In this document: positions 3,704-50,260 of the stretch, piece after piece | Layout of the letters: every line of letters begins with the position of its first letter | Position numbering within the stretch: the first letter of the stretch is position 1 | From: Epithemia pelagica | Lineage: Eukaryota > Protista > Bacillariophyta | Direction: 5' to 3' | Length of the DNA stretch: 64,000 nucleotides | NCBI GenBank assembly: GCA_946965045.2 | Contig: OX337241.1 | Coordinates: forward strand, 2,790,001 to 2,854,000 | The notes under the pieces: generated by a model | Databases searched by the model: none | What the model was told of the DNA's origin: nothing | What the model saw: only the letters and a program-made list of their open reading frames with translations | Made by a program: the position numbers and the translations under genes

Positions 3704-4114
3704 GGTATAATACAAGGAGCTCTATTCTTCTTCCTTTTTGTTCGGTTGGTATCTTTCTTCTCTTGGTGACACCACCAGGTAGATCTTTTTCGGTTTGGCA
3801 GGCGCGATCTTGATCGCGCTTTTGAATCGCGTCTAAGTCGGGTGGACTCGCCTTTACAGTCGCATTTGCTGAGCGCGCTGGGTGAAGGCCTCACCATGAT
3901 GTGCCAAAGGAAGGCTCTTTAAATGTATGGATGCCACTACTGGGATTGAACATGATGTTATACTTAACGAAACTCCAAGCACAAGATCTTTTCGGGGAGC
4001 GCGAAACACGTTCTTTGGCCATCATGTCCGTCCCAGCTGGTCGACTCGATATTCCGCCGTACTATGTGCAGTGCCAGTGCTCATGTGCCTCTCTCCTGTG
4101 AAAATTTTTTGCCC

Positions 4115-4172
4115 AGGGACACGAAGTGTCCCTTCAGGGACACGAAGTGTCCCTTCAGGGACACATGTCCCT
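4115..4172. repeat. Tandem 21-bp units of a palindromic hairpin (AGGGACAC-GAA-GTGTCCCT-TC) x2 plus a shorter third palindrome
   Basis: agggacacgaagtgtcccttc at 4115-4135 and 4136-4156; agggaca-ca-tgtccct starts at 4157. Confidence 0.95.
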
Positions 4173-4359
4173 GCGCAGGGGAGGAGGAGATGGACGCCCG
4201 CCCTCTTCTGGCCTAACTAATTTCTGCCTGTCGAGATCTCGCGCCCAAGTGGAGCCGAAACCGCCACATTTCCACAAATCTCCTCGTCGGTTCAAATCTC
4301 TCCACCTGAACAATCAAACCGTTTAGAGTTTTGAGTGTGTGCTGCTGCTGTCATCCAAC

Positions 4360-8759: not shown

Positions 8760-8916
8760 TCCGAAAACCAAAGAGAACCACACACAACCACGGAGATAAC
8801 AATAGCAGGCACACAAGGAAGAAGAGGGTTTCCTCTCTCTAGTAGTAGAGATTATGCATTAGACTAGTGCGTTCTAATTCTTGAGCGCGCCGTTTTGCGA
8901 ACCATTCTTTTTCGTG

Positions 8917-12821: not shown

Positions 12822-13844
12822 TTAAGTATTTAAGAGCGACCGATTGGATAGCCATGCGCGCCTGCCGATCAGATCTTGTGAGATTGATGGTTCGCCCTGT
12901 CCTGTTGTGACTGTCAAACTGGTTGTTGTTGTGCTAGCATGCGACCAAACTGCCAATGGTTTGGAATCCTGAACATGTTCCGTATCCAGATAGTGCAAGG
13001 GCGAAGCCACTGCTTGGCTCGTAGCACGTTGTGGTCGTATATCGCCGCTCGTGTCGTCGTCCAGCAGTTTCCTAGAGGATGACGAAACGGAGGAGGATCG
13101 TTTGCGAGAAGAAGTTTGTTTGGAGAGACTGGTAGTTCCGACATATTGTTGTTGTTGTTGTTGTTGTTGGTTTTTGAGTCGAATATCGCGAAATTGTTGT
13201 CCCAACTTTTCCCGTGCCACTACATCGCTCACTTGGAACCATTCCGTCGTATAGGGATCCTACCAAAAAACAACAACAACACCAACAACAAATATCATGA
13301 GTTGGAACGACGCCTCACTCTAGACGACAACAACAAATCCGACAAGAGACATACCTGTTTGACAAAGGCCCCCTGTCCTTCTTGGACGGCATGCAAAATT
13401 TCCGTCACAATCAGCGACTTTTCCGTCTTGGTACTGGCCCGTTCATAGCGTTCCTGATGCGCTTCACAGAGAATCCGAAAACGGGCTGCTGACTGTGCGT
13501 CGTCATTGTTCGATACCGCGCACGACGAGACAAAAAAAGACACGAGAAAAATACAGTGCAAGGGATGAGGAGAACATGACAAATCATAATTCCAGATGCT
13601 GAGAAATACGGTACCATACACCATGTAGGAGTGAACGCGACACACAGCCGTACTACTAGTACCCACCATGATTGTAAAAGGCCTTGCCCCGTCCACAAAT
13701 GACGGTCCATTCATTGGGTTCAAAGTCGGGAGGTAACAAGCGGGCGCGATCGACGGAGACATGGGCCAATAGGGATTCGTGCACATGAGAAGGAAGATGA
13801 CCACCTTGCGCCGTTTGGCTGGTCAAGGAGCCTCGATCCACCAT
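12822..13844 (-). CDS. DUF6824-type diatom protein, copy A (tandem paralog); 3 exons, exon-2 acceptor uncertain
   Basis: MVDRGSLT start shared with copy B; WTVICGRGKAFYNH / RFRILCEAHQERYERASTKTEKSLIV..GAFVKQ (donor 13354) / DPYTTEWFQVSDVVAREKLGQQFRD (exon 3 from 13259). Confidence 0.8.
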
Positions 13845-14129
13845 GGTAGTGCACTTTTTCCTTGTGATTGTGGTTTCAGTTCAATTCGTTGTTGTTGCGG
13901 TTGTCTAGAGTGTGTGTGTGTGTGGTGCAAGGGCGTGTGGGATGCACACACAATATAGAGTGAGTAATGGTTGGACGAGAGCGATTCATCCTTGCTCTTT
14001 TTCCAAAATGTGGCGAACTCTGGTTCGCTTGCCGCGGAAAACGATGCCGATCGGGGGTTCGTTCGGCGCTGGATGTGGTTGGGTGCTTTCATCCGAACTC
14101 CGAACCGGTTGGGCATAAAAAAAGAGAAG

Positions 14130-19237: not shown

Positions 19238-19935
19238 TTATTGGATGCCCCTCATGACGGTCCGTACTTGACAAGCTCCAAAAATGACACATATTCCAGT
19301 TGCCGTGAGGAAAAAGGCAACGCCAATGGCAACGTAAAACAGGTAGTCTTCTTGTTCCTTGAGACACGAAGACTCGCTGTCGTTTGTAGCAGTACCCTTT
19401 TTCTCAAGTAATGTGGGTACATCCTCCACAGTGACTTGGACTTGCTCCACTACTCGAAGAAGCACTGGATCGTGATCATGGTACCAAGGCAACAGACGGT
19501 CAATGAGATCTTCAAAGGCAAAACGGAGAGTCGTTTGAATAATGGTTTCAATGCGTTGGACTTCCTTTTGTGAAACCTCATGCTGGTGATTGGTCACGTC
19601 CGTAACAAACCTTAAATACCCTTGAATGGAGGCCAAATCAAAGAGGTTGGAATGTTATGGAAATTTGGATCAGTATTGCTTTCGGTTCCTTGAAAGGCTC
19701 GATCAAAACGATCAAATGTGATTTGCACCGAATCAAATCGTTCCTCATTTTCCTTGCGAAAAAGGGAGTCAATTTCTTGAAAGGACAGCTCTAGGTAGGA
19801 ACTCGTTGCCAATTGTAGTTTTCGTTCGAGTTCCTTCACGTCCAAATCATCGTCCAATACCGACAGATTGACAAAGAATTGAGGAAGCGGGTACACTCCC
19901 TTCGAACGGCGTGAATTGCCTCGCCTGAAGAAGCA
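19238..19935 (-). pseudogene. Frameshifted remnant of a single-pass membrane protein gene (diatom-type small ectodomain plus TM)
   Basis: Two overlapping frames (19612..20004 and 19238..19636) read as protein-like and join near 19640; ends with TM segment YLFYVAIGVAFFLTATGICVIFG. The 5' end abuts the Harbinger remnant. Confidence 0.35.
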
Positions 19936-20019
19936 GAGAAAGGAACAAGCGGTCAAGGAGAAAACAAACAAAAAACAACATTGGTGAAAAAGAAACAAGA
20001 CCAACCGAACAACAATACC

Positions 20020-21050
20020 TCATCCAAGCCACCGAAACCTCCAACCATTCATCCCCCATTCAGAGAGCTGCCTCACTGAAGTGGTAGCTCGGAACAACTC
20101 ACTCTTCTGTCGAATGCGACCCTCTTGATCCGTGTTGCTTTGATACGACTTCAAAAGGGCCTGTCGCCGTTCCGAGCCGAATGCAGAATCAACGACAACT
20201 CGCGCGCCTCCTCGATTACGTTCACGGGCATGAATGGAATCTATCTTGTTGTAGGTATCCGAATAGATAGCGAGCGTCGAGTCATGCCAGGATCCAGGCG
20301 CGTTAATATACGACGCCCGGATCCGCCCATCAGGAGAGAACAAGAAGAGGTTTGAAATAAAGTGGTCACACTTCCACCCGTTGTAGAACAGGTTTTGGTG
20401 CTTCGCATTGGCCTCTATAGGAACCTTTAAACCATCCATGGCCCCCCAAACATTTCGTAGCACTGGATACTTGCGTCGTATGGCTTTCTTGAATCGTCTG
20501 ACTTCCTTCTTCGTAGGGAGCTTTACTTCGGCATCTGGATGCCAATGTAGGACCTTGACCAGAATTCTTTGACCAAACCGCAGCCAAACAGACAAGGGGT
20601 TAGCAGTTAGGCCAAAGACCAGTTGGAGCAACATTGTGGATCCACGCGTACGTGTCCAAGCCAATACTAGTGCAAGGCATATTTTCGCATCAATCAACCT
20701 TCGACCTCTCCTCTTCCCTTTCGGACTCAATCAACGCATGGAGGTGCGATTCTTGGCCGATTGAGGGTATGGCGTCCAATTATCAAAATAAGGCGCAAAC
20801 AGATGAAGCAGCTTTTGGAAAGAAGCGTGGTCGAATCCACACAAGGCTATGAGGGACGCATCTTCTCCACTGTTGTAAAGTTTCATAAAAGCGGAGTGCT
20901 TAGGATGGTGGAGAGACCCTCTACCGATTCCACCAGGACGCAAACGACGACGAAGACGCTCTAATTCTTATTGACGGTCATCCTCTTGCTGCCCTCTACG
21001 ATGGAGCAATAAAACCACAAGTCTTCCTCTTCGTCGTTCATGGTTATTAC
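20020..21050 (-). mobile_element. Decayed PIF/Harbinger (DDE_Tnp_4-type) transposase
   Basis: AMDGLK, PGSWHDS, VVDSAF and LSEWGM give the D-D-D-E pattern; N-terminal SLIALCGFDHASF helix motif. In-frame TAA at 20970-20968, frameshift near 20735-20780, and homology lost after EWGM. Confidence 0.85.
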
Positions 21051-21715
21051 AAACTACACTCTAACGAAGCTACGAAAGGAGATGAACGAAACGACGACGC
21101 CCTGTCTTACGCATGGAGAGAGCTACGTGCAACGTCCGCGGTGGAGGTGGAAACAACTTGGCTTCCTGGGGGAACGGGGGTCCAAAAGGCGTCATCATGG
21201 ATCATGGAGGATAGTCCCGCGACAAAACCACACCCGAAGTTGGTAACTCTAGACCCTGCCGAAATAATGGCCATACTCATGACTCATCGATCATCCATGA
21301 CACATGACACGAGATAAAAATTCACATGGGCCACGCTTCTCCACGCGCTATGCTGACTACTGACTACCCAGTGACGAAAAATCTGACAACATGGGCAATA
21401 GTTTTGAATATCTCTCCTTTTGTAATTAAAGAGAAGAAATAATACTCCAAGGCCATGGTAGTACTTGGTACTCGTAGTAGGTAGTCGATAGTCTAGAGGT
21501 AGTCAGAGGCCAAATCCGACCAATGCCGCTAACAGGGTTCCGTTTTCAATAACATTATAAACGAGGGGGCGTGAAGAAAGGTCAGATGCCGACTCCAAAC
21601 AGCTACTATGTTGAATCATGATGAGACGGAGAAACTGAAACAGGCTTATTGTGGAAGTTCGAAGTTATAGGGGAATGGCGTCCTCCGACCTCCGACCAGG
21701 TGTGGAGTCACGATC

Positions 21716-34531: not shown

Positions 34532-36933
34532 TTATTTCGTGCAGGGTCCATCCAGAGAACACTGACGACAGGCATTTTCACAAACAAAGGTTTCCCCAGC
34601 ACCTAGGACCCTGCACTCATTTCCGACAAAAACTTGGTTATCGGGACAGTTTCGAACCACGAGTGGGTTACCATTCACGCAGACGACAACCGCGGTACAA
34701 GACGGATTGGCGGGAAGGAACGAAAAAGATCCATCGGGTGGACAACAGGGCTCGGCTGCAATGGGAGGGTTGGTGGGACTCTGAGATGGATTGCTGGTCC
34801 TCGTCGGAGCCGCGGATTGGGAGGGTTGTGAGGATGGAGCCCTTGACGTGGATGGAGCAGACGATGGTTCCATGCTGGGAGCGGCCGATACGGAAGAAGA
34901 GTCACTGGGAACCATGGACGGTTCCACACTGGGAGCGGTGGAGAGACTCGGCCGGGCACTGGGAAACGAACTGGGAGTCTTGGAAGGACGATCCGACGGA
35001 GAGAACGAAGCACTGGGAAATGAACTGGGGGTCTTGGAAGGACGATCCGAAGGAGAGGACGAAGGAGTTTTGGAAGGCTCGGAACTGGGTGCTGGTGAAA
35101 GGGAGGGCGTCGAACTGGGCTCTTGCGATAAGGTAGGCGTCGAACTTGGTGCCTGTGATGGCGTTCTCGAAGGAGCTTTGGAAGGCCTTTGTGAAGGCGT
35201 TGCACTGGGCTCTTGAGACGGATTGTCCGAAGGGCTACCGGATGGAATGCTAGATGGACTAGAAGAAGGACTTGTAGATGGAATATCCGTTGTCACGCCT
35301 GCTCGCAGTGCGTCCACACACTCCAGCGTAGCTCGAGCGTCCGCCAATCCAGCTCCCAGATCATCGCCAAGATTCTCTGCTTCGTCGTACATGCACTTTT
35401 TCAAGTCTGCGTTTGTGGCGTCTGGGTTGATACTTTTGGCCAGAGCAAGTATGCCTGCAATATGAGGACACGCCATACTGGTTCCGGACATTGTTAGATA
35501 GACCTCGGGGTGGAAGCCTGTCGAAAGGACGTTCCTTCCAGGCGCTGCAATATCGATCCAATCTCCTCTGTTGGTAAAATCAGACATTCTCTTATCGAGT
35601 TCCACGGACGCGACCGCGACGACTCGTGCATCTGCTCCGGGGTAATACAGATCTCTCGACCGCCTGTTCCCGGCAGCAAAAACAACCAACACATTTTTGT
35701 CCGTAGCATATTTGATGGCACTCTTCATGATGTCTGGATAGGCTCCTGCAGACGTGTAGCCCCACGAATTGGAACTAATGTGAGCACGGTTGTCGGCTGC
35801 GTAGACCATGGCTTTATCTACCCCTCCGGCACGACTCTTTCCAAACACGACAGTCGTCATGACTTGAACACCAAGATGGTCTTTGGTCCCACCGGCGACA
35901 CCGGCCACTCCCCGGTTATTGTCTGTGGTGGCCGCAATCGTACCAGTACAGTGACTCCCATGGTTATTGCTGCCCACAAGGTCTTTGCCTGAACCGTCAG
36001 CAAAGTTGTACCCATGGCAATATTTTGCACCACAGTTTGGATTCGTCCACAGATTACCTACAATTTAGAAATAATTGACAACATGACAAGCACAAAGTCA
36101 GTTGGGAGAATCTTGCGTCATGTCCATTTCAAAAGATCGACTTGTATCTTACTTTGTGAATCTGGGTGCTCCCGGTCCCATCCAGAGTCTGAGACATGCA
36201 TCACAATGTTGTTTAGGTTTGGCCATGCTCCTTTCGTGAACATATAGTCCCAAGCCTCGTGCAGCTTGATCAAGTTAAAATGATCGTTTTGCTCGTCTAC
36301 TCGAAGGTCATTAGGAAATGCTGCCAATGGTGTCGTCCCATTTCCGGTTAGGAATCGTGCCGAGTTGCGTCGCAGTCGTTGCTGTTTGGACGACAGCACT
36401 TCCTCGCTAACAACCTCCTGTATAATCGTATACTCGGCTTCAGCTGCTTCAAGTGGCGCCCAAGGATTGTAGCTGGAATTCAATTGATTCAGTTGTTCCG
36501 TCAACCGATTACTTTCGAGGCGCCTCAACTGTTCCAGAGCTGCGATGGTAGCCTGACCGGTTTGGGAGAAAGAGCTTGATCCCTTTGTGCAGTTGAACTT
36601 GACCCATCGAGTCAAGCCATAGGCTGAGTGCGCCGCGAGATTTTCTTCGGATGCCACAAACACTTTTTCAAACGAAGTGCAAAGGGGATAGAGATTATCC
36701 AGTACTTCTTGGGCTGCTTGTTCCACAGCACGTAGCTCATCTGCAATAGAATTTATGGAAAATCCTGACACGTTTTTGAGACTCGCAAACTTGACGTTAA
36801 AGTAATCGTCAATGCCGCCTTCTGCCGAGTGTTGCTCCAACAAGCGTCGATCAGGAAAGCGTGATCCATCAGTGCCATGTTCAACAAACAAATAAAGGGC
36901 AACCACAAAAAACCAAGACAGTCTCATTGTCAT
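34532..36933 (-). CDS. Secreted subtilisin-like serine protease (S8) with P/S/T linker and C-terminal CBM14/peritrophin-like domain; intron 36152-36058
   Basis: Signal peptide MTMRLSWFFVVALYLF; catalytic VSDSG, HGSHCTG, FAAGN, SGTSMACPH; spliced HPDSQSNLWTNP; mucin-like S-x-x-P-S repeats; Cys-rich CCPP...CTAVVVCVNG...CPDNQVF...C. Confidence 0.9.
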
Positions 36934-37204
36934 GACAACACGTATGGAAACTACAAGTTGCAACGTCGTAGTTCCTATGATTAGGAAAAATATGAAACCA
37001 TGGGATTGCCCTTTCGGTTCTACAGTTGGTCCTGCGGAAGATTGTGTGTGTTCTATAATTTGTTCTTGTGACAACTACCGAATTTGTGGACCGCCACGCG
37101 TATTCGACTCAGCTTCCTTAAGCGAGTCATTTCAACTAATTGCCTCCATTCTTAGTCCACGTTTGAGTAGTCGTTTAATTTCAAACTGTAGCGCCCTTCG
37201 AGTC

Positions 37205-37455
37205 CCGCATCGTACCCAACAGGTTAAGCAGGGACCGACGGACGAACGATGAGAGACTGATGATGTCGCTCCCAACAAGATGGCAACGACACGTCAGAGT
37301 TGGTTGGGGTCATCAATGACTCTTATGAGTCATACCCCAACCTACGAGAATATGGAGAAAGGATTCCTAAAGGAGTCATAAGTTTATGAGAAGAAAACTC
37401 TTCGGTTGTATCACGGATCTGATCACCCATTGATCATCGTGGAGTTCTCTTTTTG
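37205..37455 (+). repeat. Split direct repeat A1
   Basis: Identical to 45619-45869. Confidence 0.95.
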
Positions 37456-37549
37456 TTTTCTTTTTCTCCCTGTTGACCGTGCCAACCACTCGTTCGTTCG
37501 CTTTGTTCTCTTTTCTGGGTTCTCTTCCTTTGCGTTCCTATTACCCGCA

Positions 37550-39907
37550 ATGTTCGATTGGACGGGGACTTCGGAATCCTCGCCCTCTGTGGGGTCAACA
37601 GGTGAGTCTTTTGTGTCAGTTACCGGGGGGGGTGCCCTACGTTCGGGTTCTCTCTTCGGTATCCTGCGGATGGAAGAGTCCGCTTTTGGAGATTTGTGTC
37701 GGGGCGTCATCGGGTCAGGGCAACGCATTTGTTTGCGTTCGGAGTGTAACATTGCCTCCCATTCGGTCAAAAAAGTCAGTTGGGCCCAATTGGTCGGGGA
37801 TGATTCGCACTGTATCTTCATCCAAGGTTCCAGTGGTGCAGAAGGCGAAGCCGCAACCAGTGTGTTCGGTTCCCCGGTTCTTCCGGGTTCATGTGTTCGT
37901 GATTCCGAATGGGCGGAATTAGAAACAAGTCCTCGAAGTTTGGAAAGCTGGCAAGCTACATTTGCTTCTCTTAAAGATGCCATGCAGAATTCTGGATCTG
38001 ATCAAGTCGACGAGAAGACAGTGGCCGATCTGCTGGAGACCACTAAACACGACGTGAAGTTTGTCTTTACGCCAGCCAGGAAGAAGCATCGGGGCAAGGA
38101 TATCGCTACGAGTACGCCTTCGCAGGATTATGATCAAAAACCCGCTGCCAAGAAACCGATTCCTAAGCCTATTCCTTTTTTCAAGGTGCCCGTCGAATTG
38201 GGCTCTCAGCCTGACAAGGCTATTCGTACCCTTATTCAAGGAGCTTGGCGAGACCTTGTAACCAATGTTTCAACTCTCAAGGCTACCATTGAGATCGAGC
38301 GTTCCAAGTCGCCGACTGAGAATGTGGGGGCGGATGCGTATTTGGATGAAATTGAGTTGAAGACTTCGGTTCTGCGAGAACTTTTGGGAGATCGACCAGC
38401 AGATTTTGGAACGGCTTCAGCTTTCGGATTACTGTCCCAAGTGGTGGAGTCTCTGCGCGATTTGGAGGCATCGATGAACGTGTATAAGGTTCGCGTAGAC
38501 TCGTTGTCGGTTGGTTCGATCTCTACTGCGCTGGAACAGCGAATTCAAGTCCTGGAGGATCAAGCACGGTCGTTCGAATCGCTCATGCAAAAGGCGATCA
38601 AGGAACAACTTGATATCCATTTTACTCGAGGGGATTTTCGCACTCAGTTCATCGAGCCCACGTTGAAGCTGCTTTCTCGATCGTCTCGAGTGTCAACGGA
38701 CCCGGGGGGAAAATGGGAGGATGAACTCACAGGTTTGGCCTCCAGAGTTTCGACGTTGGAATCAGCCCAAAGCAATCAACCGTCCACTGCTTCCGTCAAT
38801 TTCTTGAACCATGGAAGTTCGAACAACTCGTCGGGTCTTTTCCAATGGAATGCACAAGCTCCCTTGTCATCGACCCCAACAACAACAACAGGAAGTGTGG
38901 TGGGGGATCTGCGTCAGGAAATGCTTGCCTTGAAGGAAGAAGTGGCGCGCTTGAAAGCAGATGTAAAGGATTTGCAGGATCAGGCCGAATCGGACGCCAT
39001 TGTCATTGGCTCTATTGTCTTCTCTTCGAAGAAGTTTTGCCAAAGTTGGCTTGTCTTGCATGGGGCCGAAGGAGATCCTCACGTGTTTGTCGATCCTGTA
39101 TCAATGTTGTCAATCTCAACATCGGACGCTACCCAGGACGAAGAACGGGCCGCTAACCAGCGAGCAACAACAGCGAAGGTCAAAGACAAATCGCCGTATC
39201 ATACGGCCTACATCGCGTCCTTTAGCCTGGAACTACCGCCATTGCTGGGCAAGGGAGGAGATTCATCGCTCACAACTAATTCGCGAGCTTTAGCGGGGGT
39301 TCCACGCTTCGTTGATTTCCACCCACCGTCCGGCAGGGAAGGAATTCAACAACGAATCTTGGATTACATTAAAGACGGGAAGAAGACTTTGGAGGAATCG
39401 ATTGGCGACCTTTTCGCGTTTGGGTCGGAACCGGCAAGCGTCGCTCGAGAACTCTTACTTCTTAGTAAGACGTTCTGGGACGAGCTTTGCCATTGGATGA
39501 TTCGCTATCACCGCGAAATCAAAGAAGAAAGCGACGCTACCGAGCACGAGGTCTGGATACTTATATCGCATTGTGTACGTGCGGTATTTAAGAGTCTGCG
39601 TGACGCTCGTGCTCCCGGTCGTGCATCGTCAACCCCCGGTGGAATGCTTTGGGGAACACTTCGAGCCCATCAGGTCATGAAGGATTATCGAGGCCACGAC
39701 TTCAGCGGCCACCCAAAAATTGCACTAATCCTGCATGAACATCTCATTCGTTTTTCGACGCCTCGCTCAAAATTCGATGAGCTCCAATTGCAATTCGACG
39801 AAAAGCTGGAGAAGGTTCAGCGATCAGTGAACCAAGCGGTGGCAGCTGTGAACAAGAAGGGTAGTAACAATAAATCTACAGGCGAATCCAAGAAGCAACA
39901 AGGTTGA
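37550..39907 (+). CDS. Gag-like ORF1 of the YR retrotransposon
   Basis: First ORF after A1; N-terminal C-x9-C-x4-C-x4-H (CRGVIGSGQRICLRSECNIASH); long coiled coils; ATG 37550 within track ORF 37406..39907. Confidence 0.8.
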   Translation: MFDWTGTSESSPSVGSTGESFVSVTGGGALRSGSLFGILRMEESAFGDLCRGVIGSGQRICLRSECNIASHSVKKVSWAQLVGDDSHCIFIQGSSGAEGEAATSVFGSPVLPGSCVRDSEWAELETSPRSLESWQATFASLKDAMQNSGSDQVDEKTVADLLETTKHDVKFVFTPARKKHRGKDIATSTPSQDYDQKPAAKKPIPKPIPFFKVPVELGSQPDKAIRTLIQGAWRDLVTNVSTLKATIEIERSKSPTENVGADAYLDEIELKTSVLRELLGDRPADFGTASAFGLLSQVVESLRDLEASMNVYKVRVDSLSVGSISTALEQRIQVLEDQARSFESLMQKAIKEQLDIHFTRGDFRTQFIEPTLKLLSRSSRVSTDPGGKWEDELTGLASRVSTLESAQSNQPSTASVNFLNHGSSNNSSGLFQWNAQAPLSSTPTTTTGSVVGDLRQEMLALKEEVARLKADVKDLQDQAESDAIVIGSIVFSSKKFCQSWLVLHGAEGDPHVFVDPVSMLSISTSDATQDEERAANQRATTAKVKDKSPYHTAYIASFSLELPPLLGKGGDSSLTTNSRALAGVPRFVDFHPPSGREGIQQRILDYIKDGKKTLEESIGDLFAFGSEPASVARELLLLSKTFWDELCHWMIRYHREIKEESDATEHEVWILISHCVRAVFKSLRDARAPGRASSTPGGMLWGTLRAHQVMKDYRGHDFSGHPKIALILHEHLIRFSTPRSKFDELQLQFDEKLEKVQRSVNQAVAAVNKKGSNNKSTGESKKQQG

Positions 39908-40057
39908 TCTGGACGGGAGAACATTGGCGAGAATGATAACGGTACGAGGGATGAAAGTATATGTGAAGAAAAGACAAGAGAACCATCAACGATTAGTGAT
40001 GATAAGTTAGACTGTGATGCAATTGCTGAAACATCGACACTCTTCCCACTCGGCGTC

Positions 40058-43000
40058 TTGGAGAAAAAGAACATGGGCCTTCCCGTAGGCTATGGATCGT
40101 TGGCGATTGGGTTGGTGTGTTTCTCTGTTCCATTTTGGTTTTGGTCAACATCACTCCTGGGCTCTGTGTCGTGGATAGATGTTTGTCACCCTGTCTCTTG
40201 GCTCGCTTCAGTCCAAGGCTCGACACTACCGTTGGTGATGGAAGAGAAGGATGCAAGTCCTGACAGAAGAAAGAGAAAGTCCGATGGAAAGCTGAAGACT
40301 CCGCCTGTTTTTGCTGAACGTTGGAACGAGGCTGATGTTATCTTGTTCGATGAGTTGTGCCCGGGGCCCTCCCATGATGTATGGAAGTCCGTTAGAGTTC
40401 AGTTTGTTGTATGGTGGAAGAGCAAGTCATGGAGCGGCCCCCCAAAAGAAGAATCAAGGTGGATCGTTTCGAAACTAAGAATGGAGCATGCAACACTAGG
40501 AGGAGTGACCACAAGAGTTGACTGGATCTTTGTAGCTTCTCGCTTCATGCACTCAGATCAGAAGCAAACCATCAGCTTTTTGGATTGGTGGAAAGGATCA
40601 ATGGAAAAGGGATTGAGTTTGACAACGGTTCGTGGCATCATTAAGCCCACGGAGCATGGGAAACCTCGAGCTGTGTCCAAGGTCAAGTCAGAAGATCTGT
40701 TGTGTGACCGCAAAATGAATTGGAAACTGGATAGGGAGAAGGTTCATATCCTCCCAAGTGTATTCTCTCCAACGGGTCTGGTGCAGCGAAAGCTTGTGCC
40801 AAAGGAGTTAGCACTAGCACTGGATTTCCCCTCTCAATTGAGTGCCGGTCGGTCAGACGAGGAACTGTCAGAACTGATTGATAAGACTGGACCTCCATTC
40901 AAGACGCGAGTTCAGGTTGTGCGGCTCATCCGTGACTTCATTGAACAGCAAACCTCTGCGAAATCCAAGAAGAGAGAAAGGCCCGAAAGCTCTCGAACGG
41001 ATTCCAAAGTTGCATCGTCTGATGTTAGTGCACATGGAATGAAGGTAGACGAAGACGAGCGTGTACCTGACGACATGGAGATACTAACCGACAACGCGCT
41101 TCACGAATTGGAAAGAGAAGAAGACCGCAATTTAAAAGCAACAAAATCGGATGACGCCGCTATTCCTCATTATTTGTGGAACGATCGAATACTTGATCGT
41201 TTTGGAATGGTGAACGAAGATGACAGGGCAAGAGGAATTCACGCTCTCGATTGGATAAGACACGGAGCGTTGATATATTGGAAACGTTTAGTTTCAAGAA
41301 GTTTCTGGAGGTGGTGGCGCGATTCGCAATCGTGCCTTTCAACATCAGAAAGACAAACTTCAATCGCATCAGGACTCAGCGCTTTACGTCATTCTGCGCT
41401 AGCTTCATGGTGGGATTGGGATGCAGGGTCGTCCCCCTTTTTCTGGCGGATGCCGGACCCCGATTGGCTCGTTGATATGAGGGATGGGGTAAAACCAATG
41501 TGGATTGGACCCCCACCCAAGTATAGAATACCACAACGACCTAATCCAGATCCGGCCCATCTCGCGTTAGAAAAGAAGAAGATTGGAAAGGTCCGAAAAC
41601 GCGGTTACATTGGTCCTACCGAGGGAATTCGTTCCTTAACGAGTTTCTTTTCAGTACCCAAGGGACCGTCGGACATTAGAATGGTTTATGATGGAACCAA
41701 GAGTGGATTGAACGATTCACTCTTGGCTCCTTGGTTTGGATTGGCTACGGTGGATGCCATGTTAAGAACAGTCTGTGAAGGCACGTGGTCAGGTGACAAC
41801 GACTTTGGTGAAATGTTTCTCAATTTCTGGATTCATCCAGAAATTAGAAGCTATACGGGAGTTGATTTAACTACGCTGTTCCCAGAGGAGCTTGATGCCA
41901 AGGATGGTTCGAAGAAATGTCTTTGGGAGGCTTGGACTCGTTGTGCAATGGGGGTTACTGTGTCCCCATATCAGACCACGCAATGTACTCAACGGGTCAA
42001 GCGGATTGTTTTCGGATGTCGGTTCAACGATGATAATATTTTCCGGTGGACCGATGTTCGCCTCAATTTACCGGGAAACGATGACTATGATCCCTCAAAG
42101 CCTTGGATTTGTAAAGTCAGGGAAGACGGAAAAATAGCTGTGGATGTGCATTCGTACGTCGATGACTTACGAGGTACAGCGCCATCCGAAGAAGAGGCAT
42201 GGCAAGCATCTAGTGCAATGGCCAAAGGTTCAGCATATTTTGGCTTGCAAGACGCAGCACGCAAGCGTAGACCACCAAGTCAGAATCCAGGGGCTTGGGC
42301 TGGCGCAGTGGTAGAGACGACCTCAGAGGCCGTGTTCAAAACAGTATCCCAAGAACGATGGGACAAGACGAAAAAACATGTCGCAACTCTGGCCGACTGG
42401 GCTGGAAAGGACGATCCAATCAACCGGAAGGAGCTGGAACGAATCCGAGGTTTTCTGGTGTACGTGTCGCTCACCTTCAAAGCCCTGGTTCCGTATTTGA
42501 AGGGTATACACTTAACCCTTGAAAGTTGGCGACCCGACCGCGATTCCGAGGGTTGGAGAGTCGGAAAGAAGCAAAGACAAGAATTGGTGCAAGCATCGAG
42601 CGACGCATCAATGAGAAAAGAAGCTCCGATAGAAGTGGAGCAAGTTCCAAGATTTAAAGATGACATTCGCGCGATCAAGGAACTCACCGACTTCGAGAAA
42701 CCACCTAAGCTCTTAGCCAGGCCAAGAAAGGGATCTAAGGCTGTGATTGTGTTCGCTGATGCATCGGGAGAAGGATTTGGATCTTCACTCTGGATTTACG
42801 GGTCTGATACGGTGGACACTGAACATGGTCTGTGGACCAGACAGTATGGGTCCCGCTCATCGAATTTTCGGGAACTTTACAACCTGATCCTTCGGTTGGA
42901 AGCCTTGGTACATGGTAACCAGCTTGAACATGGGGCGGAAGTTTTTATGTTCACTGACAACGCAACGTCAGAGTCAGCCTTTTACCGAGGCACGTCGTCG

Positions 43001-43693
43001 TCATACCTTTTGTTTAGTTTGGTTCTTCGCGCCCGAAAGATGGAGATGGATGGACGAATATTTTTGAGGGTGGTCTGGGTAGCTGGAACGCGAATGATCG
43101 CTCAGGGAACAGATGGTCTGTCCCGAGGCGACTTGATGACGGGCGTCATGGCCGGGAGCTCGATGTTGTTTCACGTACCGCTAAATCGTCATTGCGAAGA
43201 AAGACAACCAGGGGTGGTTCCTTGGCTAAAGAGCAATTGTGATGATCGAATCTGGGTTGACACCACACCAACTGATTGGTTTGACGGTATCTTCAATAAA
43301 GGAAACTTCGTCTGGACTCCGCCACCTTGTATCGCTGATGTTGCAGTGGATCAACTGTGTGATTCAGTGCACATACGTCCCAGAAATAGCCACATATTCG
43401 TTTGCCCTGCCCTGATGACATACTTGTGGCGAAAGAAGCTTGGAAAAGTCGCTGACTTTGTGTTTAAGATTCCCGCTGGCTGCGGAATTTGGTCTCAGTC
43501 TCAACATGAACCTTTGATTGTTGCTTTCGTGTTACCTCATCTCTTTCGCAGGCCTTGGCAAGTTCGAAGAGCAAAAGGGTTATTGGATGACATCGAAAAC
43601 CACATGCGTGAAATGTGGTCATCCAGTGGCACCCCTGATGGGTCTTGTTTGCGCCAACTATGGGCATTCAAGGGGTACAAGCCGAGTGTGTAA
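40058..43693 (+). CDS. Pol ORF2: C5-methyltransferase-like domain + reverse transcriptase + RNase H + C-terminal PPP (MT-like) region
   Basis: RT FFSVPKG..IRMVYDGT, NDFGEMFLNF, SYVDDL; RNase H FADASG, RELYNL, FTDNAT, DGLSR; C-terminal FVWTPPP. The first in-frame ATG is at 40073. Confidence 0.92.
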   Translation: MEKKNMGLPVGYGSLAIGLVCFSVPFWFWSTSLLGSVSWIDVCHPVSWLASVQGSTLPLVMEEKDASPDRRKRKSDGKLKTPPVFAERWNEADVILFDELCPGPSHDVWKSVRVQFVVWWKSKSWSGPPKEESRWIVSKLRMEHATLGGVTTRVDWIFVASRFMHSDQKQTISFLDWWKGSMEKGLSLTTVRGIIKPTEHGKPRAVSKVKSEDLLCDRKMNWKLDREKVHILPSVFSPTGLVQRKLVPKELALALDFPSQLSAGRSDEELSELIDKTGPPFKTRVQVVRLIRDFIEQQTSAKSKKRERPESSRTDSKVASSDVSAHGMKVDEDERVPDDMEILTDNALHELEREEDRNLKATKSDDAAIPHYLWNDRILDRFGMVNEDDRARGIHALDWIRHGALIYWKRLVSRSFWRWWRDSQSCLSTSERQTSIASGLSALRHSALASWWDWDAGSSPFFWRMPDPDWLVDMRDGVKPMWIGPPPKYRIPQRPNPDPAHLALEKKKIGKVRKRGYIGPTEGIRSLTSFFSVPKGPSDIRMVYDGTKSGLNDSLLAPWFGLATVDAMLRTVCEGTWSGDNDFGEMFLNFWIHPEIRSYTGVDLTTLFPEELDAKDGSKKCLWEAWTRCAMGVTVSPYQTTQCTQRVKRIVFGCRFNDDNIFRWTDVRLNLPGNDDYDPSKPWICKVREDGKIAVDVHSYVDDLRGTAPSEEEAWQASSAMAKGSAYFGLQDAARKRRPPSQNPGAWAGAVVETTSEAVFKTVSQERWDKTKKHVATLADWAGKDDPINRKELERIRGFLVYVSLTFKALVPYLKGIHLTLESWRPDRDSEGWRVGKKQRQELVQASSDASMRKEAPIEVEQVPRFKDDIRAIKELTDFEKPPKLLARPRKGSKAVIVFADASGEGFGSSLWIYGSDTVDTEHGLWTRQYGSRSSNFRELYNLILRLEALVHGNQLEHGAEVFMFTDNATSESAFYRGTSSSYLLFSLVLRARKMEMDGRIFLRVVWVAGTRMIAQGTDGLSRGDLMTGVMAGSSMLFHVPLNRHCEERQPGVVPWLKSNCDDRIWVDTTPTDWFDGIFNKGNFVWTPPPCIADVAVDQLCDSVHIRPRNSHIFVCPALMTYLWRKKLGKVADFVFKIPAGCGIWSQSQHEPLIVAFVLPHLFRRPWQVRRAKGLLDDIENHMREMWSSSGTPDGSCLRQLWAFKGYKPSV

Positions 43694-45095
43694 GAGTGCA
43701 TGGCATGCAAATTGTTATTGCCAGAGTCAGGATGATAGATTCCCAGTATTGGAGCCGGGTGACTTGGACGACGCTTTGTTAGATGGTGAAGGACATGCCG
43801 AGATTGAAGACGACCCAGGCCGGTTTAAAGAGGCACGAGATGGAGACCATTTCTTGTGTCCTTTTCAGTGTGACTCGTGTTCGTTCTTCAATGTGCAGGG
43901 GCGATTTGAGCGAGACAACTCAGAACCCGATCGCCTGTTGATGGTCTGTATTCGACGAGCGAATTTAGACGCGTTCTGGTCGAGAGAGCGATCGACCGTG
44001 GATAAAAATCTACGTGAACTGAAGGGTCTCCAATCGCTAGGAGAGACGATCGGTCTCCATCGACCCCTCCCGAATCGCGGGCCTTTTCCAATCGGCGATA
44101 GCAATGGTCTTGGCGCTGCCTGTTTGATGCTCATGAAAACTTTGAAAGAGGGTAAGAATGCTAAGCACATTCAATATGAAACGGCCCGAAAAGTGAGATC
44201 AACCATCAGCAATTTCATGCATACGCTTCCTGGAGGAACTGGTTGGTCAACGATGGGATCCGGAGACCGCTCGTCGTTGGTATTCACTGCCAGCCCTACC
44301 AATTCATATTGGTACAAGCGCTTTCTCAGTGGATGTCATCGAAGAATGGGTGATGTATGGATCCCGGATAGAGCTGTGACGCTCGAAGAGATTCATGTTG
44401 GTTTGGACATCTTGGAAAAAGAATGGAAGGGTGTTCCAAGAGGCCAAAGAAAGTTGGAGGTCGCCCTGTCAGGAGCACTGGTTGTTATTGGGTTTTGTGC
44501 AGCCTTGCGCGGTGAAGAAATCCCACAGGTTGACGTCGGTCTCATCCGCAAATATTGGTTGGAAGGGATAACTTGCTCAAGAGTCGCTCACGTTCCTTTG
44601 GCAATGGCTGGTCGATTCAAACAGACCAATGGTGCATTTAAAATATACATCCAGCCGTTGGCGGAAACAACGAAGTCAGGCATCGGGATCAGACTATGGA
44701 TCGAGCGAGCAATCAGAGAGTTGAACGCGAGAAAGGTGGAATCTGGACCGATGTTTCGTCGAGTGACAAAAACAGGAAAGGTCAACCGAGCGATGGTAGG
44801 AGACTTGGACATATTGATGATTGCTCTCTGGAAGAGGATCCAACATCATCGTCCGGATATCATTCCTGATACTGTTAAGGTAGAGGAAGAATACAGTGCC
44901 AGACGATCCTTTCGCCGAGGAGCAACGACGGAAGCCCAAAATAAGAAGATACCGAAAGAGGTGATCGAAGCAAACAATCGATGGCGAAAGCACTTGAGAA
45001 ACAAGGGCGTGCTCCCTGGGATGAGCATGTTGGAAAGATATTCGGATGCAAAGGCGTCTGTCGAATCTTTGGTGCGCTTCTCAGAGTGCTTGTAA
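43587..45095 (+). CDS. Tyrosine recombinase ORF3 with N-terminal Cys/His zinc-finger-like region; overlaps the 3' end of pol
   Basis: ALRGEEIP (catalytic R), ARRSFRRGAT, NRWR, MLERYS (Y); ATG 43587 within track ORF 43518..45095. Confidence 0.9.
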   Translation: MTSKTTCVKCGHPVAPLMGLVCANYGHSRGTSRVCKSAWHANCYCQSQDDRFPVLEPGDLDDALLDGEGHAEIEDDPGRFKEARDGDHFLCPFQCDSCSFFNVQGRFERDNSEPDRLLMVCIRRANLDAFWSRERSTVDKNLRELKGLQSLGETIGLHRPLPNRGPFPIGDSNGLGAACLMLMKTLKEGKNAKHIQYETARKVRSTISNFMHTLPGGTGWSTMGSGDRSSLVFTASPTNSYWYKRFLSGCHRRMGDVWIPDRAVTLEEIHVGLDILEKEWKGVPRGQRKLEVALSGALVVIGFCAALRGEEIPQVDVGLIRKYWLEGITCSRVAHVPLAMAGRFKQTNGAFKIYIQPLAETTKSGIGIRLWIERAIRELNARKVESGPMFRRVTKTGKVNRAMVGDLDILMIALWKRIQHHRPDIIPDTVKVEEEYSARRSFRRGATTEAQNKKIPKEVIEANNRWRKHLRNKGVLPGMSMLERYSDAKASVESLVRFSECL

Positions 45096-45208
45096 TCGAG
45101 TCAAGAGGAATCGAACACGGGATCGGAGAAGGCAAGGATGGACACACAAGCGGCAAGAGCTGCGAAATGGAAATGAAGAATGTTGGTGTGGGATTCATTT
45201 ACCGAAAT

Positions 45209-45620
45209 GGGGAATTGTTCTCGGTTGAACTCTTGCGAGTAAAGCCTAGATCGCTTGTCGTTGCCAGCATGCCTGATCGATCTTAATGGATACTCAACAG
45301 ACGTGGACCAGGGCTTGGCAGCCTAATGGGAAGCGGCGCAGCACTGGTGAAGATATTTCGGAGTGCTGCGGCTCAGCAATGGGTCTGATACTGGGTTTGT
45401 CTGTTGGGGGACGTCACACTAGCGCGTAACGGACGGAAGTTTACGGGATCCGAGTCCCGTGAGCTTTTGGCGCGAACCACGATTCACGCCCGCCTTTTTG
45501 GGAAAGGATGGGTGGGGGGCCTTCCCCCCCAGAGTATGGTAATATATAGTATTATGTTATTGTGGAAGTGTGGTATCGTTGGGACGTCTCATCCGGAAGG
45601 AAGAGTGAGGATCAAGTACC
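45209..45620 (+). repeat. Split direct repeat B1
   Basis: 412 bp; matches 45885-46296 with one mismatch. Confidence 0.95.
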
Positions 45621-45869
45621 GCATCGTACCCAACAGGTTAAGCAGGGACCGACGGACGAACGATGAGAGACTGATGATGTCGCTCCCAACAAGATGGCAA
45701 CGACACGTCAGAGTTGGTTGGGGTCATCAATGACTCTTATGAGTCATACCCCAACCTACGAGAATATGGAGAAAGGATTCCTAAAGGAGTCATAAGTTTA
45801 TGAGAAGAAAACTCTTCGGTTGTATCACGGATCTGATCACCCATTGATCATCGTGGAGTTCTCTTTTTG
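45619..45869 (+). repeat. Split direct repeat A2
   Basis: Identical to A1; shares a 2-nt CC overlap with the end of B1. Confidence 0.95.
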
Positions 45870-45884
45870 CCCACCCACCCGCCC

Positions 45885-46296
45885 GGGGAATTGTTCTCGG
45901 TTGAACTCTTGCGAGTAAAGCCTAGATCGCTTGTCGTTGCCAGCATGCCTGATCGATCTTAATGGATACTCAACAGACGTGGACCAGGGCTTGGCAGCCT
46001 AATGGGAAGCGGCGCAGCACTGGTGAAGATATTTCGGAGTGCTGCGGCTCAGCAATGGGTCTGATACTGGGTTTGTCTGTTGGGGGACGTCACACTAGCG
46101 CGTAACGGACGGAAGTTTACGGGATCCGAGTCCCGTGAGCTTTTGGCGCGAACCACGATTCACGCCCGCCTTTTTGGGAAAGGATGGGTGGGGGGCCTTC
46201 CCCCCCAGAGTATGGTAATATATAGTATTATGTTATTGTGGAAGTGTGGTATCGGTGGGACGTCTCATCCGGAAGGAAGAGTGAGGATCAAGTACC
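45885..46296 (+). repeat. Split direct repeat B2
   Basis: Copy of B1; forms the right end of the element. Confidence 0.95.
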
Positions 46297-47343
46297 AGTT
46301 TGAAAGTCAGGTGAGGAAATTAAATAAGCCTTGACATGCAGTCCATCCTCTGCTCTTGTAATCCGGCATTTGTCTCTTGTAGAGCCCACATGACCCAGAA
46401 CTATCCCCACGACCTGCATCCTCAGCACTTAAACAGATATTTAGGGATGACGTGGTCCTGTGTCCGTGGCTCTGCCGTGGCCCGCAAGCCGAGCAACCCA
46501 GGCTCACAAGAACCACCGCACGCACACACGAATGCGCGCAACGATAAGAAACAAAGAAGACGATGGAGAGGCTATGATATATACATCGACGGACTCCCCA
46601 AGTTTCAGAGGCGAACAAGAACGCTTAGCTGCGGTACAAGAACTGACGAGACTCCATCAATCTGTTTTGAAACTAACTAGGTAGTATACGCATGAACTTG
46701 ACGACCAATAATTTCAAGTAGCGCCTCTGTATCTTGTCTACCTATATATACTGGTGAAGTCTTACCCACTACCGGTAGATCATTTTCCTTCCACTTCATG
46801 GCCTGGATGAGCTCATGAGTAGTGTATATCGCTCTCATTAGTAGCAGATACAGCTGTGGAAGTATCGTAGTAGCATCAGCATCTGCGGTGGTAGTCTGCT
46901 CCGAGATTGTAATGCAGTTATATCCCTAAGGTCTAATATGATCTGCTGCCAGATTACCATATCCGGGGCTGAGTAGTGAGTGTTACTATTGTGATCAATG
47001 CGTTATGCGTTGCCATCAAGTGTTGTGTCAGACTCGCAAGCTACAACTTGGATTGAGATCAACAGTGGATGGATGGACTGTGGTTCACAAAGTCAGACAA
47101 TGGATGTTCTTCCATTGACAAACAAATCCTGTGACCAACCTCACGTCGTACAGCAGAGAATGCGCATCGTGACTGTGCGAACCGAGCACTCCAGGAAGCT
47201 CTTTGTCGCAGCATCCCACCAATGACAGACGGTCACTTCCACGGTGGATCCCTGTTCCACTGCCCTTACCGTACGAGCATGGTCGCTTTGGTAGAATGGA
47301 GAGAAATTCGGGTCTCGTGTGTGTCGTTCCTACAATGTTCAGT

Positions 47344-50260
47344 TCAGGTTCGTCTACCAAGAACTCGAAGGTATCGCATACCCATGCCGCCCGCCTTCAT
47401 GGTCGTTGGAACTTGTGTGGGACGTTGGCTGGGTTGTTGACTGGGAGTGGTACTGGGTTGCAGCGTGGAGGGTCGTGTACTGGGACGGCTGCTGGGACTT
47501 GACAATGGTGGGGACGACCGACTGGGTCGGGCACTGGGAATACTGCTGGGTGCCGTACTGGGAACCAAACTCGGCAATTGGCTGGGATGGGAACTGGGAG
47601 CGACACTGGGGACGGGAGACGGAGCAACACTCTGACTGGGCACACTGGTTGGAATGACACTGGGACGGGTGCTGGGTGACACGGTGGGAGTGGCCGTCGG
47701 ATTGGAACTGGGTCGTGTGGAAGGCGATACGGTCGGACTGGAACTGGGTTGCCAGCTGGGATACAAACTTGGTCGAGTCGAGGTGGTCGGTGTGACACTG
47801 GGCCGCGACGTGGGAGACGTACTGGGTTGCAGCGAATCAGTGGGTCTGGCAGTGGGCAGTTGCGAGGGTGACCCGGACGGTTGGGACGTGGGTGTCTGCG
47901 ACGGCGACGCGGACGGAGGCGTACTGACCGTGGGGGCCGGCGTGAAAAATTCGGTTTGAATACATTGCAAAAAGGCGGGTGGATTGATCAATCCATGGCC
48001 CAGTCCTTGCGCCGAGGGATGAGTGAGGTTTGTGGCCGTCCGGTTCATGCAAGAGACCAAGTCGGTATTGGTTGCATTGGGATACAAGGTCTTGCCCAGT
48101 CCCAACATGGCCGAGACATGAGGACAGGCCATGCTGGTTCCCGACGCGGGCAAGTAGGGTGTGTCGGAATTCCACAAGCCCGTGGAATAAATGTCCACGC
48201 CCGGTGCGGCAATGTCGACCCAGGGTCCTGCATTGGAAAACCACGCCTTTTTCTGGTCATTGGTCACGGCGCCCACGGCAACCACATTGTGTGCGGCACT
48301 TGGAAAATACTGGTCCTTGGTATTCTTGTTGCCCGCCGCAAAGACCACAACCATGCCACGTGCATGAACGGCATAGTGGACGGCCGATTTCATGAGTGTG
48401 GGATAATTGCCTTGACTGGAATAATGCCAGGAATTGGAACTAATATGGGCCCCATTGTCGGCCGCATAGACCATGGAGGCTTCAAAATTACCCGGTCGGG
48501 ATGTGTTGCCAAAAATGACCGCCGTCATGATGGACACTCCGGGATACTCTCGAGTCCCGCCGGCCAACCCGGGGACACCGACGTCATTGTCGGTAGTGGC
48601 GGCCAAAATGCCCGTGACATGAGTCCCATGCACATTGGGACCAAGCAAATTCCCACCGGTTTGATCGCCAAAGTTGTAGCCATGACAATCCCCCTTGTAT
48701 TCGTTCTTGTCTTGATCCTTGGGCTTGTCACCCTCCTCGAGGTCACATTTTTCGTCGGGATTGACCCATTGATTGACTGTGGAAATTCATGGTAGTATAG
48801 CGAAAACGAGTACCAACAAAAAAGAGACAAAGAAAGCAAGCAAGCAAGCAAGCAACGAGACAAGCAACGAGACAAGCAAGTCAGCAAGACCCCAACGACC
48901 CATGTCCAACAAGAAAGCATGTGGTTAGAACGAGGAACCAAACACGCGCACTTCACAAACACACCAATACACACACACACACTTGGCCAGGACGTACCTC
49001 CCAAATCTTCATGGTTCCCCCAATCAGCTCCCGAATCGGCAACATGAATGACAACCTTTTGGGCATTGGGCCAGGCATTGTGAGTTTCCAGGATTTGCCA
49101 CGCCTGGTCCATTTGCAAGAGTCGTGTATTGCCGTACAATTTGGGCGAATACTTGGGGTCATTGGGATATGCATTGTTGAGGTGACGACGACGTGTCGTC
49201 GTGGTCGTTTGGTTGCGACGGTCCTCCTGGTTGTGGGGGAGCAACGTGTCCCTGGTGCTGCTGTGTGGATCGTCCTTCTCTTGTGGTTGTGGATGTTGGG
49301 ACCGTCGTGGGTGTCGTTCCTTTTGCCTTCTCCTCTTGTGGTGATGGTGGTTGGGCGGCATGGGTCCGCGGTACATGGCATCAATAATTTCCAATCGTGG
49401 TTCGACCAATTCAATGTGGACATCTCCCAGACCTCCCTGGTGGAGATGTCGTCGTTGTCGTTGTCGTCGTCTGGGTCCGCCGTCATGGTCTGGTTCTTGT
49501 TGTTGCTCTTGCTCGAGTTGTTGTTCTTCCAACCGCATGAGATACAACAAGGCGTCGTGGACGCCTTGTCCCTTTCTCGTATTCGTATTGGAGGAAAAAG
49601 AAGAAGAAGCAGAAGAAGAAGCAGTTTCGTCCTCCATAGTGTCCAACGTGCTGGTGGTGGCCATGGTGGCGGGTTCCGCACTCCTGCCCTCGTCTCCACC
49701 TCCTCCTCCTCCTCCTTGTTCTATGCCAGGACAGGTGTATTCAAACCATTGGGGAAATTGATACTGGGCATGCAAGGCGGCCACTCGGGGATTGTGATGC
49801 GGTGTGGGAATGGCCGGTCGCACCTCGGTACACCAGGGTTGTAACAACTCTTGGACGAATTGGCCAGCGACTGCCACACAACACTAACGGTTGTGGGCTC
49901 GTTCAGTGTGTGGTCGTTCTCTGTGTGGTCATGGTTCGGTTGGAGTGCGGCCACAATGGCGGCCGATGTGTTGGCAAATTTGATTTGCAAGACAGGTTCC
50001 ACATGACCCTGCTCGACTCGTTGTTGCAACCATCGACGAGAGGGAAAGACGGTTCGTTGGCGTCGTGGTGATTGTTTGGTTGTGGAGAATGGCGGTGTTG
50101 TGGTTGGGGCAGCAACCGCAATAAGAAACAATGGTGGTTGCCAGAATCCGACCAACAACAAGACGATCGACACACCCAGAACCACCCAGTGCCTTGTTGT
50201 TGTCGTCGTTGTCGTCGTCGTTGACAGGCTTCGTTTTCGTTTTCTACTGGTTGTTGTCAT
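47344..50260 (-). pseudogene. Second subtilisin-like protease gene (tandem paralog), frameshifted in the prodomain; intron 48997-48777
   Basis: VADSG, spliced EDLGVNQWVNPDEKC, HGTHVTG, FAAGN, SGTSMACPH and P/S/T repeats. The N-terminal frame (RRWLQQ..LQIKFA) and the next frame (VQELLQPWCT..WFEYTC) both match paralog 1 but are out of frame near 49880, with no plausible intron. Confidence 0.8.

Follow-up and report, generated by a model that had tools for sequence, protein, structure and literature searches.

What kind of mobile element occupies positions 37205 to 46296 of a 64,000-nucleotide stretch of the Epithemia pelagica genome (contig OX337241.1 of assembly GCA_946965045.2, positions 2,790,001 to 2,854,000 of the forward strand; hereafter the window), how did it enter this locus, and how recently? 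We find that this ~9.1-kb element consists of three open reading frames (ORFs) framed by two kinds of direct repeats, that the second and third frames are predicted to encode a reverse transcriptase (RT) with RNase H and a tyrosine recombinase (YR), respectively, and that a second copy of the locus lacks the element. The explanation that we favour, with a probability of about 0.85, is an autonomous tyrosine-recombinase retrotransposon of the DIRS order with split direct repeats in the layout A1-int-B1A2B2, which lies in a nuclear contig, probably of a diatom, and which, of two nearly identical versions of the locus, has recently entered only one.

Repeats and enzymes of the element

From left to right the element reads A1, ORF1, ORF2, ORF3, B1, A2, a 15-nt spacer and B2, with every part on the plus strand. 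The 5' split direct repeat A1 (251 nt, 37205-37455) is identical to its internal copy A2 (45619-45869) at 251 of 251 positions, and the internal copy B1 (412 nt, 45209-45620) agrees with the 3' terminal repeat B2 (45885-46296) at 411 of 412, the sole mismatch being 45579 versus 46255. Both pairs combined match at 662 of 663 positions, the single difference that the original prediction had counted. The dinucleotide CC at 45619-45620 is common to B1 and A2; CC also makes up the first two bases of A1 and the last two of B2, where it is the overlap with the target. These outer ends, 37205 and 46296, are fixed to the base by the element-free copy of the locus. The C-rich spacer between A2 and B2, cccacccacccgccc (15 nt, 45870-45884), is without a counterpart after A1. 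There are no inverted repeats of at least 30 nt within 35000-48500 and no second copy of the element in the 64-kb window, and Rfam and tRNA scans of the window gave no matches.

Between the repeats lie ORF1 (785 aa, 37550-39907), ORF2 (pol; 1206 aa, 40073-43693) and ORF3 (the YR gene; 502 aa from its first ATG, 43587-45095, in a frame that is open from 43518). All three are uninterrupted, as had been claimed. Of the predicted order A1-gag-pol-YR-B1-A2-B2, the repeats and, by structure, the RT/RNase H and the recombinase stood up, whereas ORF1 owes the name gag only to its position, and a gag or structural role of its product is putative. We reject an assembly artefact as the source of this layout, since five further loci, spread over two genomes, show it as well: whole in L002, L003 and L005, decayed in L004 and with only A1/A2 left in L006.

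What do these frames encode? Single-sequence (phmmer) and family-profile searches of ORF1-3 against PDB sequences returned nothing or coiled-coil noise, and searches against NCBIfam and PHROGs returned nothing useful. The AlphaFold (AF2) model of ORF2 (predicted local distance difference test, pLDDT, 87.8; predicted template modelling score, pTM, 0.84) has as its best Foldseek matches the RT of cauliflower mosaic virus (CaMV; 2.7e-16), the protease-RT (PR-RT) of foamy virus and the RTs of Moloney murine leukaemia virus (MMLV), human immunodeficiency virus 1 (HIV-1) and Ty3; the RT matches span E values from 1e-16 to 1e-13, and at least 500 Foldseek matches have E<=1e-3. A viral Foldseek search of the same model retrieved caulimovirid, retroviral and hepadnaviral pol proteins, all as RT matches and none for the extra domains of pol, and no DDE-integrase-like match occurred among the ORF2 structural matches. 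Across 73 sequences the RT motifs SVPKG, DNDFGEMFLNF, MGxxxSPY, YVDD and LQDAARKRR, and likewise the RNase H residues D, E, D and D, are invariant or nearly so. The structural model thereby supports an RT and an RNase H of the retroviral/caulimoviral type in ORF2.

Within approximate bounds, ORF2 comprises a conserved N-terminal domain of ~290 aa (40091-40969), a disordered linker (40973-41116), a helical region (41105-41599), the predicted RT (41603-42490, with YVDD at 42155-42166), the predicted RNase H (42728-43135, with D 42758, E 42872, D 42956 and D 43112) and, after it, a conserved and confidently folded alpha/beta domain of ~185 aa (43136-43690, with WTPPP at 43313-43327). Profiles of the N-terminal and C-terminal domains alone gave only noise against the PDB. 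The WTPPP-helix-strand pattern of the C-terminal domain may resemble a DIRS motif. This domain might be the methyltransferase-like domain that separates PAT and DIRS1 from Ngaro; in PAT and DIRS1 elements such a domain follows RNase H (PMC3266345, PMC4157794), and the window element also has an extra domain there.

The best 50 PDB matches of the ORF3 model (AF2, pLDDT 87.7) in Foldseek are all tyrosine recombinases (50/50), among them Cre (6.6e-5, probability 1.0), Tn1549 Int, XerH, lambda Int and IntI. Candidate catalytic residues, conserved in relatives, are R308 (44508), K345 (44619), R440-x-x-R443 (44904-44915), W466 (44982) and Y485 (45039), and Cys/His-rich modules lie at 43605-43880. 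In tyrosine recombinases histidine is normal in the HxxR motif, a spacing of 23 residues between R and W is usual, and W and Y are about 9 apart; ORF3 has the 23-residue spacing from R to W, an arginine at the position of the histidine and 19 residues from W to Y. Taken together, the modelled fold and these residues support a Cre-like tyrosine recombinase of two-domain fold. With Cre/loxP the system has in common this fold and an exchange inside a short shared overlap; unlike Cre/loxP, the element shares only 2-3 nt with its target, has no long symmetric target site and carries its recombinase as part of a retroelement.

Have these genes been maintained? A search of the assembly ENA ERZ21939226 for copies yielded a second copy of the family of the window element, L005, which is 96.08% identical over 9 kb and whose own A1 and A2 are identical. 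Between the two copies, dS is 0.14-0.17 and dN/dS is 0.098 for ORF1, 0.087 for ORF2 and 0.043 for ORF3. Judged from these substitution ratios, all three frames are under strong purifying selection, and thus all of them, ORF1 included, have evolved as functional genes.

The empty site and the integration reaction

How did the element enter the locus? The 271-aa gene to its left is also present on a second contig, ctg1277l, where it encodes the same protein. On this contig the 2-kb left flank and the 2-kb right flank are contiguous, with two bases between them, and are 98.2% and 98.6% identical to the flanks in the window. The empty site reads ...ttcgagtc CC agtttgaaag..., the filled site ...ttcgagtc CC GCATCG...[element]...CAAGTA CC agtttgaaag..., and the internal B1/A2 junction CAAGTA CC GCATCG. 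The dinucleotide CC is therefore found once in the empty site, at both element ends in the filled site and once in the B1/A2 junction, and the net gain at the filled site is 9090 bp. This pattern is the signature of a reciprocal recombination between a circle carrying the B/A junction and a target that shares the CC. In other copies the target overlap is CC (L003) or CGC (L005). We propose that the junction core GTACCGCATCGTACC (45616-45630) is the recombination (attachment) site of the circular form. Its motif GTACCGCA(T/C)CG(T/C)ACC is kept in four divergent families of the genome while the surrounding sequence is variable, and the crossover between element and flank falls inside it.

The intact copy in the window, together with its empty site on ctg1277l, makes an unusually clean example of recent tyrosine-recombinase-mediated integration. 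Since the two pin the crossover to two bases in a conserved junction motif, the integration reaction becomes directly testable, for which a defined attachment site and a foldable recombinase are available.

The flanks of the filled and the empty site diverge by 1.4-1.8%, the repeats of the element by 0.15%, i.e. ~10-fold less. In the model for such elements, A1/A2 and B1/B2 are near-identical at insertion (PMC6681497). Since 2-3 nearly identical versions of the host proteins are found on separate contigs, the assembly looks haplotype-resolved and the insertion in the window hemizygous. The original prediction of a young and maybe active element is supported by the near-identity of the repeats, the intact ORFs, the empty site with its more diverged flanks and the purifying selection.

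Could the recombinase alone account for this mobility? In such a Crypton-like scheme it would excise and reinsert a double-stranded DNA circle, with the RT as a passenger or in some other role, and the empty site would have arisen by precise excision. Tyrosine recombinases are indeed able to excise circles and to integrate them on their own, and a precise excision would leave behind the very site ...gagtc-CC-agttt.... Moreover, a Tara metagenome scaffold of 9053 bp (L007) is circularly permuted (pol-YR-(B,A)-gag), with pol, YR, a single B-A region and an ORF1 that runs off the contig end. However, an assembler is expected to yield such a permuted contig by collapsing A...B-A-B repeats, and a circular or tandem form would look alike. 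The selection described above extends to the RT/RNase H with its invariant catalytic residues, the A-int-BAB redundancy that the Ngaro/PAT reverse-transcription model needs (PMC6681497) is without a role in simple excision, and Cryptons carry no RT (PMC3212892). We consider DNA-only mobility improbable and retain the retrotransposon as the explanation.

The targets themselves share a feature at two of the loci. In the window, TTTCAAACT (37182-37190) and AGTTTGAAA (46297-46305) bracket the insertion point as a hairpin-like target, and in the L005 flanks a T9-ACCAC / GTGGC-A13 pair (near 3540-3562 and 14058-14085) brackets the insertion likewise; the L003 target has a direct GACCCCCCAT repeat instead. 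These hairpin-like targets, although a small sample, may hint at a target preference.

Expression and proposed cycle

ORF1 and ORF2 lie in the same frame and are split by a single TGA (39905-39907); the spacer behind it is free of additional stops in all four copies compared (the window copy, L002, L003 and L005). In the window this spacer, open and in frame, spans the 165 nt between the TGA of ORF1 and the ATG of ORF2 (39908-40072); it measures 138 nt in L002, 12 nt in L003 and 9 nt in L005. One frame, a single TGA and an open spacer point to read-through, which probably yields an ORF1-ORF2 fusion; some retroviruses make such read-through fusions. ORF3 is in the +1 frame relative to ORF2 at every locus examined and mostly overlaps it, by 107 nt in the window copy. 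A conserved CxxC sits upstream of the ORF3 start set by the gene caller, which suggests that translation of ORF3 begins within the overlap.

Based on these features, we propose that a full-length RNA of the element is transcribed; a relative was found as an MMETSP transcript. ORF1 would be translated from it, ORF1-ORF2 would result from occasional read-through of the TGA, and ORF3 would be expressed from the overlapping +1 frame. The RT/RNase H of ORF2 would then copy the RNA into DNA, and the internal B1-A2 copy would let complete ends regenerate and a closed circle with a B/A junction form. Finally, the Cre-like recombinase would join the junction core (GTA-CC-GCATCG) to a genomic site sharing 2-3 bases, with no duplication beyond the shared bases. 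DIRS-type integration is described in the same terms: it uses a short stretch that matches the circle junction exactly, and the target is not duplicated (PMC3266345). Any roles of the N- and C-terminal pol domains in this cycle are putative, as is the structural role of ORF1.

Might ORF1 instead be a true capsid protein, and the element an integrated reverse-transcribing virus of pararetrovirus- or hepadnavirus-like type? ORF1 is long (785 aa) and conserved; it has a C-x10-C-x4-C-x4-H motif near its N-terminus (37697-37762) and coiled-coil-like segments in its centre, and conservation is high in its C-terminal half. Structurally, the RT comes closest to caulimovirid and foamy-virus enzymes, with hepadnaviral P proteins matching too, and ocean metagenomes often contain relatives on contigs of 6-10 kb. 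Yet the RTs of the DIRS order are themselves close to those of Ty3/gypsy and caulimoviruses (PMC3266345, PMC6681497), and no envelope, movement or capsid-like fold was found. Moreover, the element encodes a recombinase, has defined split repeats and was cleanly inserted by recombination, and one genome contains multiple nuclear copies from several diverged families. An integrated virus is therefore a very improbable source of this locus, and we keep to the retrotransposon.

Several points weigh against this reading or parts of it. One could equally read the CC at both ends as a target duplication of 2 bp. As for the empty copy, it might have arisen by paralogous duplication or by precise excision and need not be the ancestral allele; even with a paralogous empty site, though, the insertion postdates the duplication, and paralogy or excision would both still show mobility. 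Gene conversion could in principle have kept the identical repeats alike. In the assembly only two copies of the window element's own family were found, and the L005 copy is defective, with a stop at W371 of the recombinase and a 1395-bp insertion in B2. The ORF1 profile found coiled-coil noise only in the PDB and no capsid or gag similarity. The RNA downstream of the ORF1 TGA has no stable structure and folds worse than shuffled controls (z = +1.5 to +2.2 in four copies), so that read-through would proceed without a visible stimulator and stays an inferred step; the metagenomic relative L008 has additional stops beyond the TGA. Lastly, the steps of retrotransposition are modelled on DIRS, Ngaro and PAT.

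Some of these points can be combined into the picture of an old, domesticated or dead element, with gene conversion keeping its repeats identical and the second contig stemming from a paralogous duplication that preceded the insertion. The low copy number with one broken member fits it, and the near-identical copies of host proteins on different contigs would make paralogy possible. What counts against this picture are the intact ORFs, the gap between flank divergence (1.4-1.8%) and repeat divergence (0.15%), and dN/dS values of 0.04-0.10 at a dS of ~0.15, which show that the copies diverged while functional; a paralogous empty site would, moreover, still prove an insertion after the duplication. 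We hence regard an old or dead element as highly unlikely, and a recent insertion of an autonomous retrotransposon as the better account.

Relatives, classification and surroundings

How widespread is the element? The same assembly contains two further families (56-63% pol identity), represented by the complete copies L002 and L003, both of which show the three ORFs and the A-int-BAB layout; L006 is a degraded copy of a fourth family, in which only A1/A2 are still detectable. In Epithemia clementina, L004 has a decayed A-int-BAB layout with repeats ~92% alike, and relatives in this species reach 54% identity for ORF3 and 40% for ORF1. A Skeletonema menzelii relative shares a cluster with an MMETSP transcript. 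Among the matches listed, the named relatives, Epithemia clementina and Skeletonema menzelii, are all diatoms, which indirectly bears out the earlier assignment to a diatom. This gene set is also found on 6-10-kb contigs from Tara Oceans and other metagenomes. A full profile search, counted in clusters at 50% identity, returned 14,050 at E<=1e-3, 8,631 at E<=1e-10 and 2,730 at E<=1e-30, and its best 150 matches are all family members, with no outgroups. A precomputed Pfam domain is present in none of ~240 relatives among the matches listed, whereas neighbouring host genes of the same assembly do have Pfam matches. Profile-based surveys of RTs and transposable elements (TEs) in plankton and diatoms may therefore under-count or mislabel the family.

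Individual copies show further peculiarities. Identical 170-nt direct repeats lie immediately outside A1 (4064-4233) and B2 (13290-13459) of L002, and its A1 lacks the first 24 nt, whereas the other copies have a clean overlap of 2-3 nt; the insertion may have been aberrant, or the region may have been duplicated locally. The 1395-bp insert in L005 (12585-13985, ctg1283l), in the AT-rich part of B2, has perfect terminal inverted repeats (TIRs) of ~30 nt (ccctcggtatcagtgtccactgcttagctg...) and probably represents a small DNA transposon of the TIR type that lies within the retroelement. L006 encodes a Ty1/copia-type polyprotein (PF07727 RVT_2, gag_pre-integrs) at 19754-21458, ~8 kb downstream from its degraded copy. 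In the metagenomic relative L008/L009, which was assembled identically from two independent samples, the stretch that separates the recombinase gene from the 3' repeats has an extra 259-aa ORF on the minus strand (8591-9370).

Where does the element belong among the known groups? We judged its likeness to Ngaro, PAT, DIRS1 and VIPER by layout, domains and published descriptions. Its RT and RNase H (found by structure matches, with sequence-only searches blank), a tyrosine recombinase in place of a DDE integrase (Foldseek matches and conserved residues), and a short sequence in common with the circle junction without a 4-6-bp target duplication place it in the DIRS order. Its layout is closest to Ngaro, with split direct repeats, internal repeats downstream of the recombinase gene and all ORFs on one strand; Ngaro-like elements, too, carry their three ORFs on a single strand, with ORF1 first, RT/RNase H second and YR last, and do not duplicate the target (PMC12477816, PMC8547959). 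Ngaro-2_Ec32 of Ectocarpus, for instance, has the A-int-BAB layout, three ORFs, a zinc finger in ORF1 and a length of 8726 bp, with no target site duplication (PMC12477816, supplement 3). The differences lie in the proteins: the pol of the window element has the extra conserved N-terminal ~290 aa and the ~185 aa after RNase H, and its recombinase has N-terminal Cys/His modules, R at the H position of HxxR and a W-Y spacing of 19 instead of ~9. The Ngaro proteins of Cafeteria burkhardae match Pfam PF00078, PF17919 and PF00589, i.e. RT, RNase H and integrase models (PMC8547959), unlike the ~240 Pfam-free relatives listed here. In a crude motif text search, the signature peptides DGLSR, VYDGT, FLNF and NRWR were not found in the Ectocarpus TE protein library.

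Split direct repeats are also shared with the PAT-like elements (Pat1, Toc3, Kangaroo; PAT-1..4_Ec32), which in Ectocarpus are 8.2-10.5 kb long and of A-int-BAB layout (PMC12477816, supplement 3). VIPER has split direct repeats too (PMC6681497) and a compatible layout, but its host is a kinetoplastid; VIPER-like elements are set apart as a clade of their own by RT, RNase H and YR. DIRS1 and the window element both combine RT/RNase H with a tyrosine recombinase and integrate at a short junction-identical sequence without target duplication (PMC3266345); DIRS1, however, has inverted terminal repeats, an internal complementary region and the order gag-YR-pol. A DIRS1-like element was rejected on the lack of inverted repeats and the order ORF1-pol-YR, and a Crypton on the presence of an RT/RNase H under purifying selection. 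LTR retrotransposons (Ty3/gypsy, Ty1/copia) were rejected as well, given a 5' end of A only, a 3' end of B-A-B, a recombinase instead of an integrase and a 2-nt overlap.

Is this a new lineage? TE tables of diatom genomes already list 'DIRS' or 'LTR/Ngaro' (PMC5859163; 10.1101/2025.04.02.646770; 10.64898/2026.04.27.720831), and we found no description of such an element in the literature that we searched. The kind of element is known; this lineage is a variant that is divergent, very abundant and as yet unannotated. Its standing as a distinct lineage is putative; the argument draws on the lack of Pfam, PDB and NCBIfam sequence matches and on the extra conserved domains, not on phylogeny. Only tentatively do we raise the idea, which we think is rather less probable than its opposite, of a fifth superfamily-level lineage of YR retrotransposons that occurs in centric and pennate diatoms, is abundant in ocean metagenomes, invisible to Pfam and still transposing, and is set apart by two extra pol domains and a zinc-module recombinase.

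Around the element, the divergent 271-aa gene (36118-36933, minus strand) has its start codon ~270 bp from the insertion, which lies upstream of it. Since the same protein is encoded on the element-free contig, a promoter effect on one haplotype may be possible, and an active 9-kb element at such a distance from a gene could make haplotypes differ in diatoms. Further out, two paralogous ORFs for subtilisin-like serine proteases flank the element (34532-35977 and 47344-48648, both on the minus strand; 46% identity, E 1e-104). Both have the GTSMACPH motif and long Pro/Ser/Thr-rich tails, and their paralogy accounts for a 50-nt repeat at 35762 and 48427.

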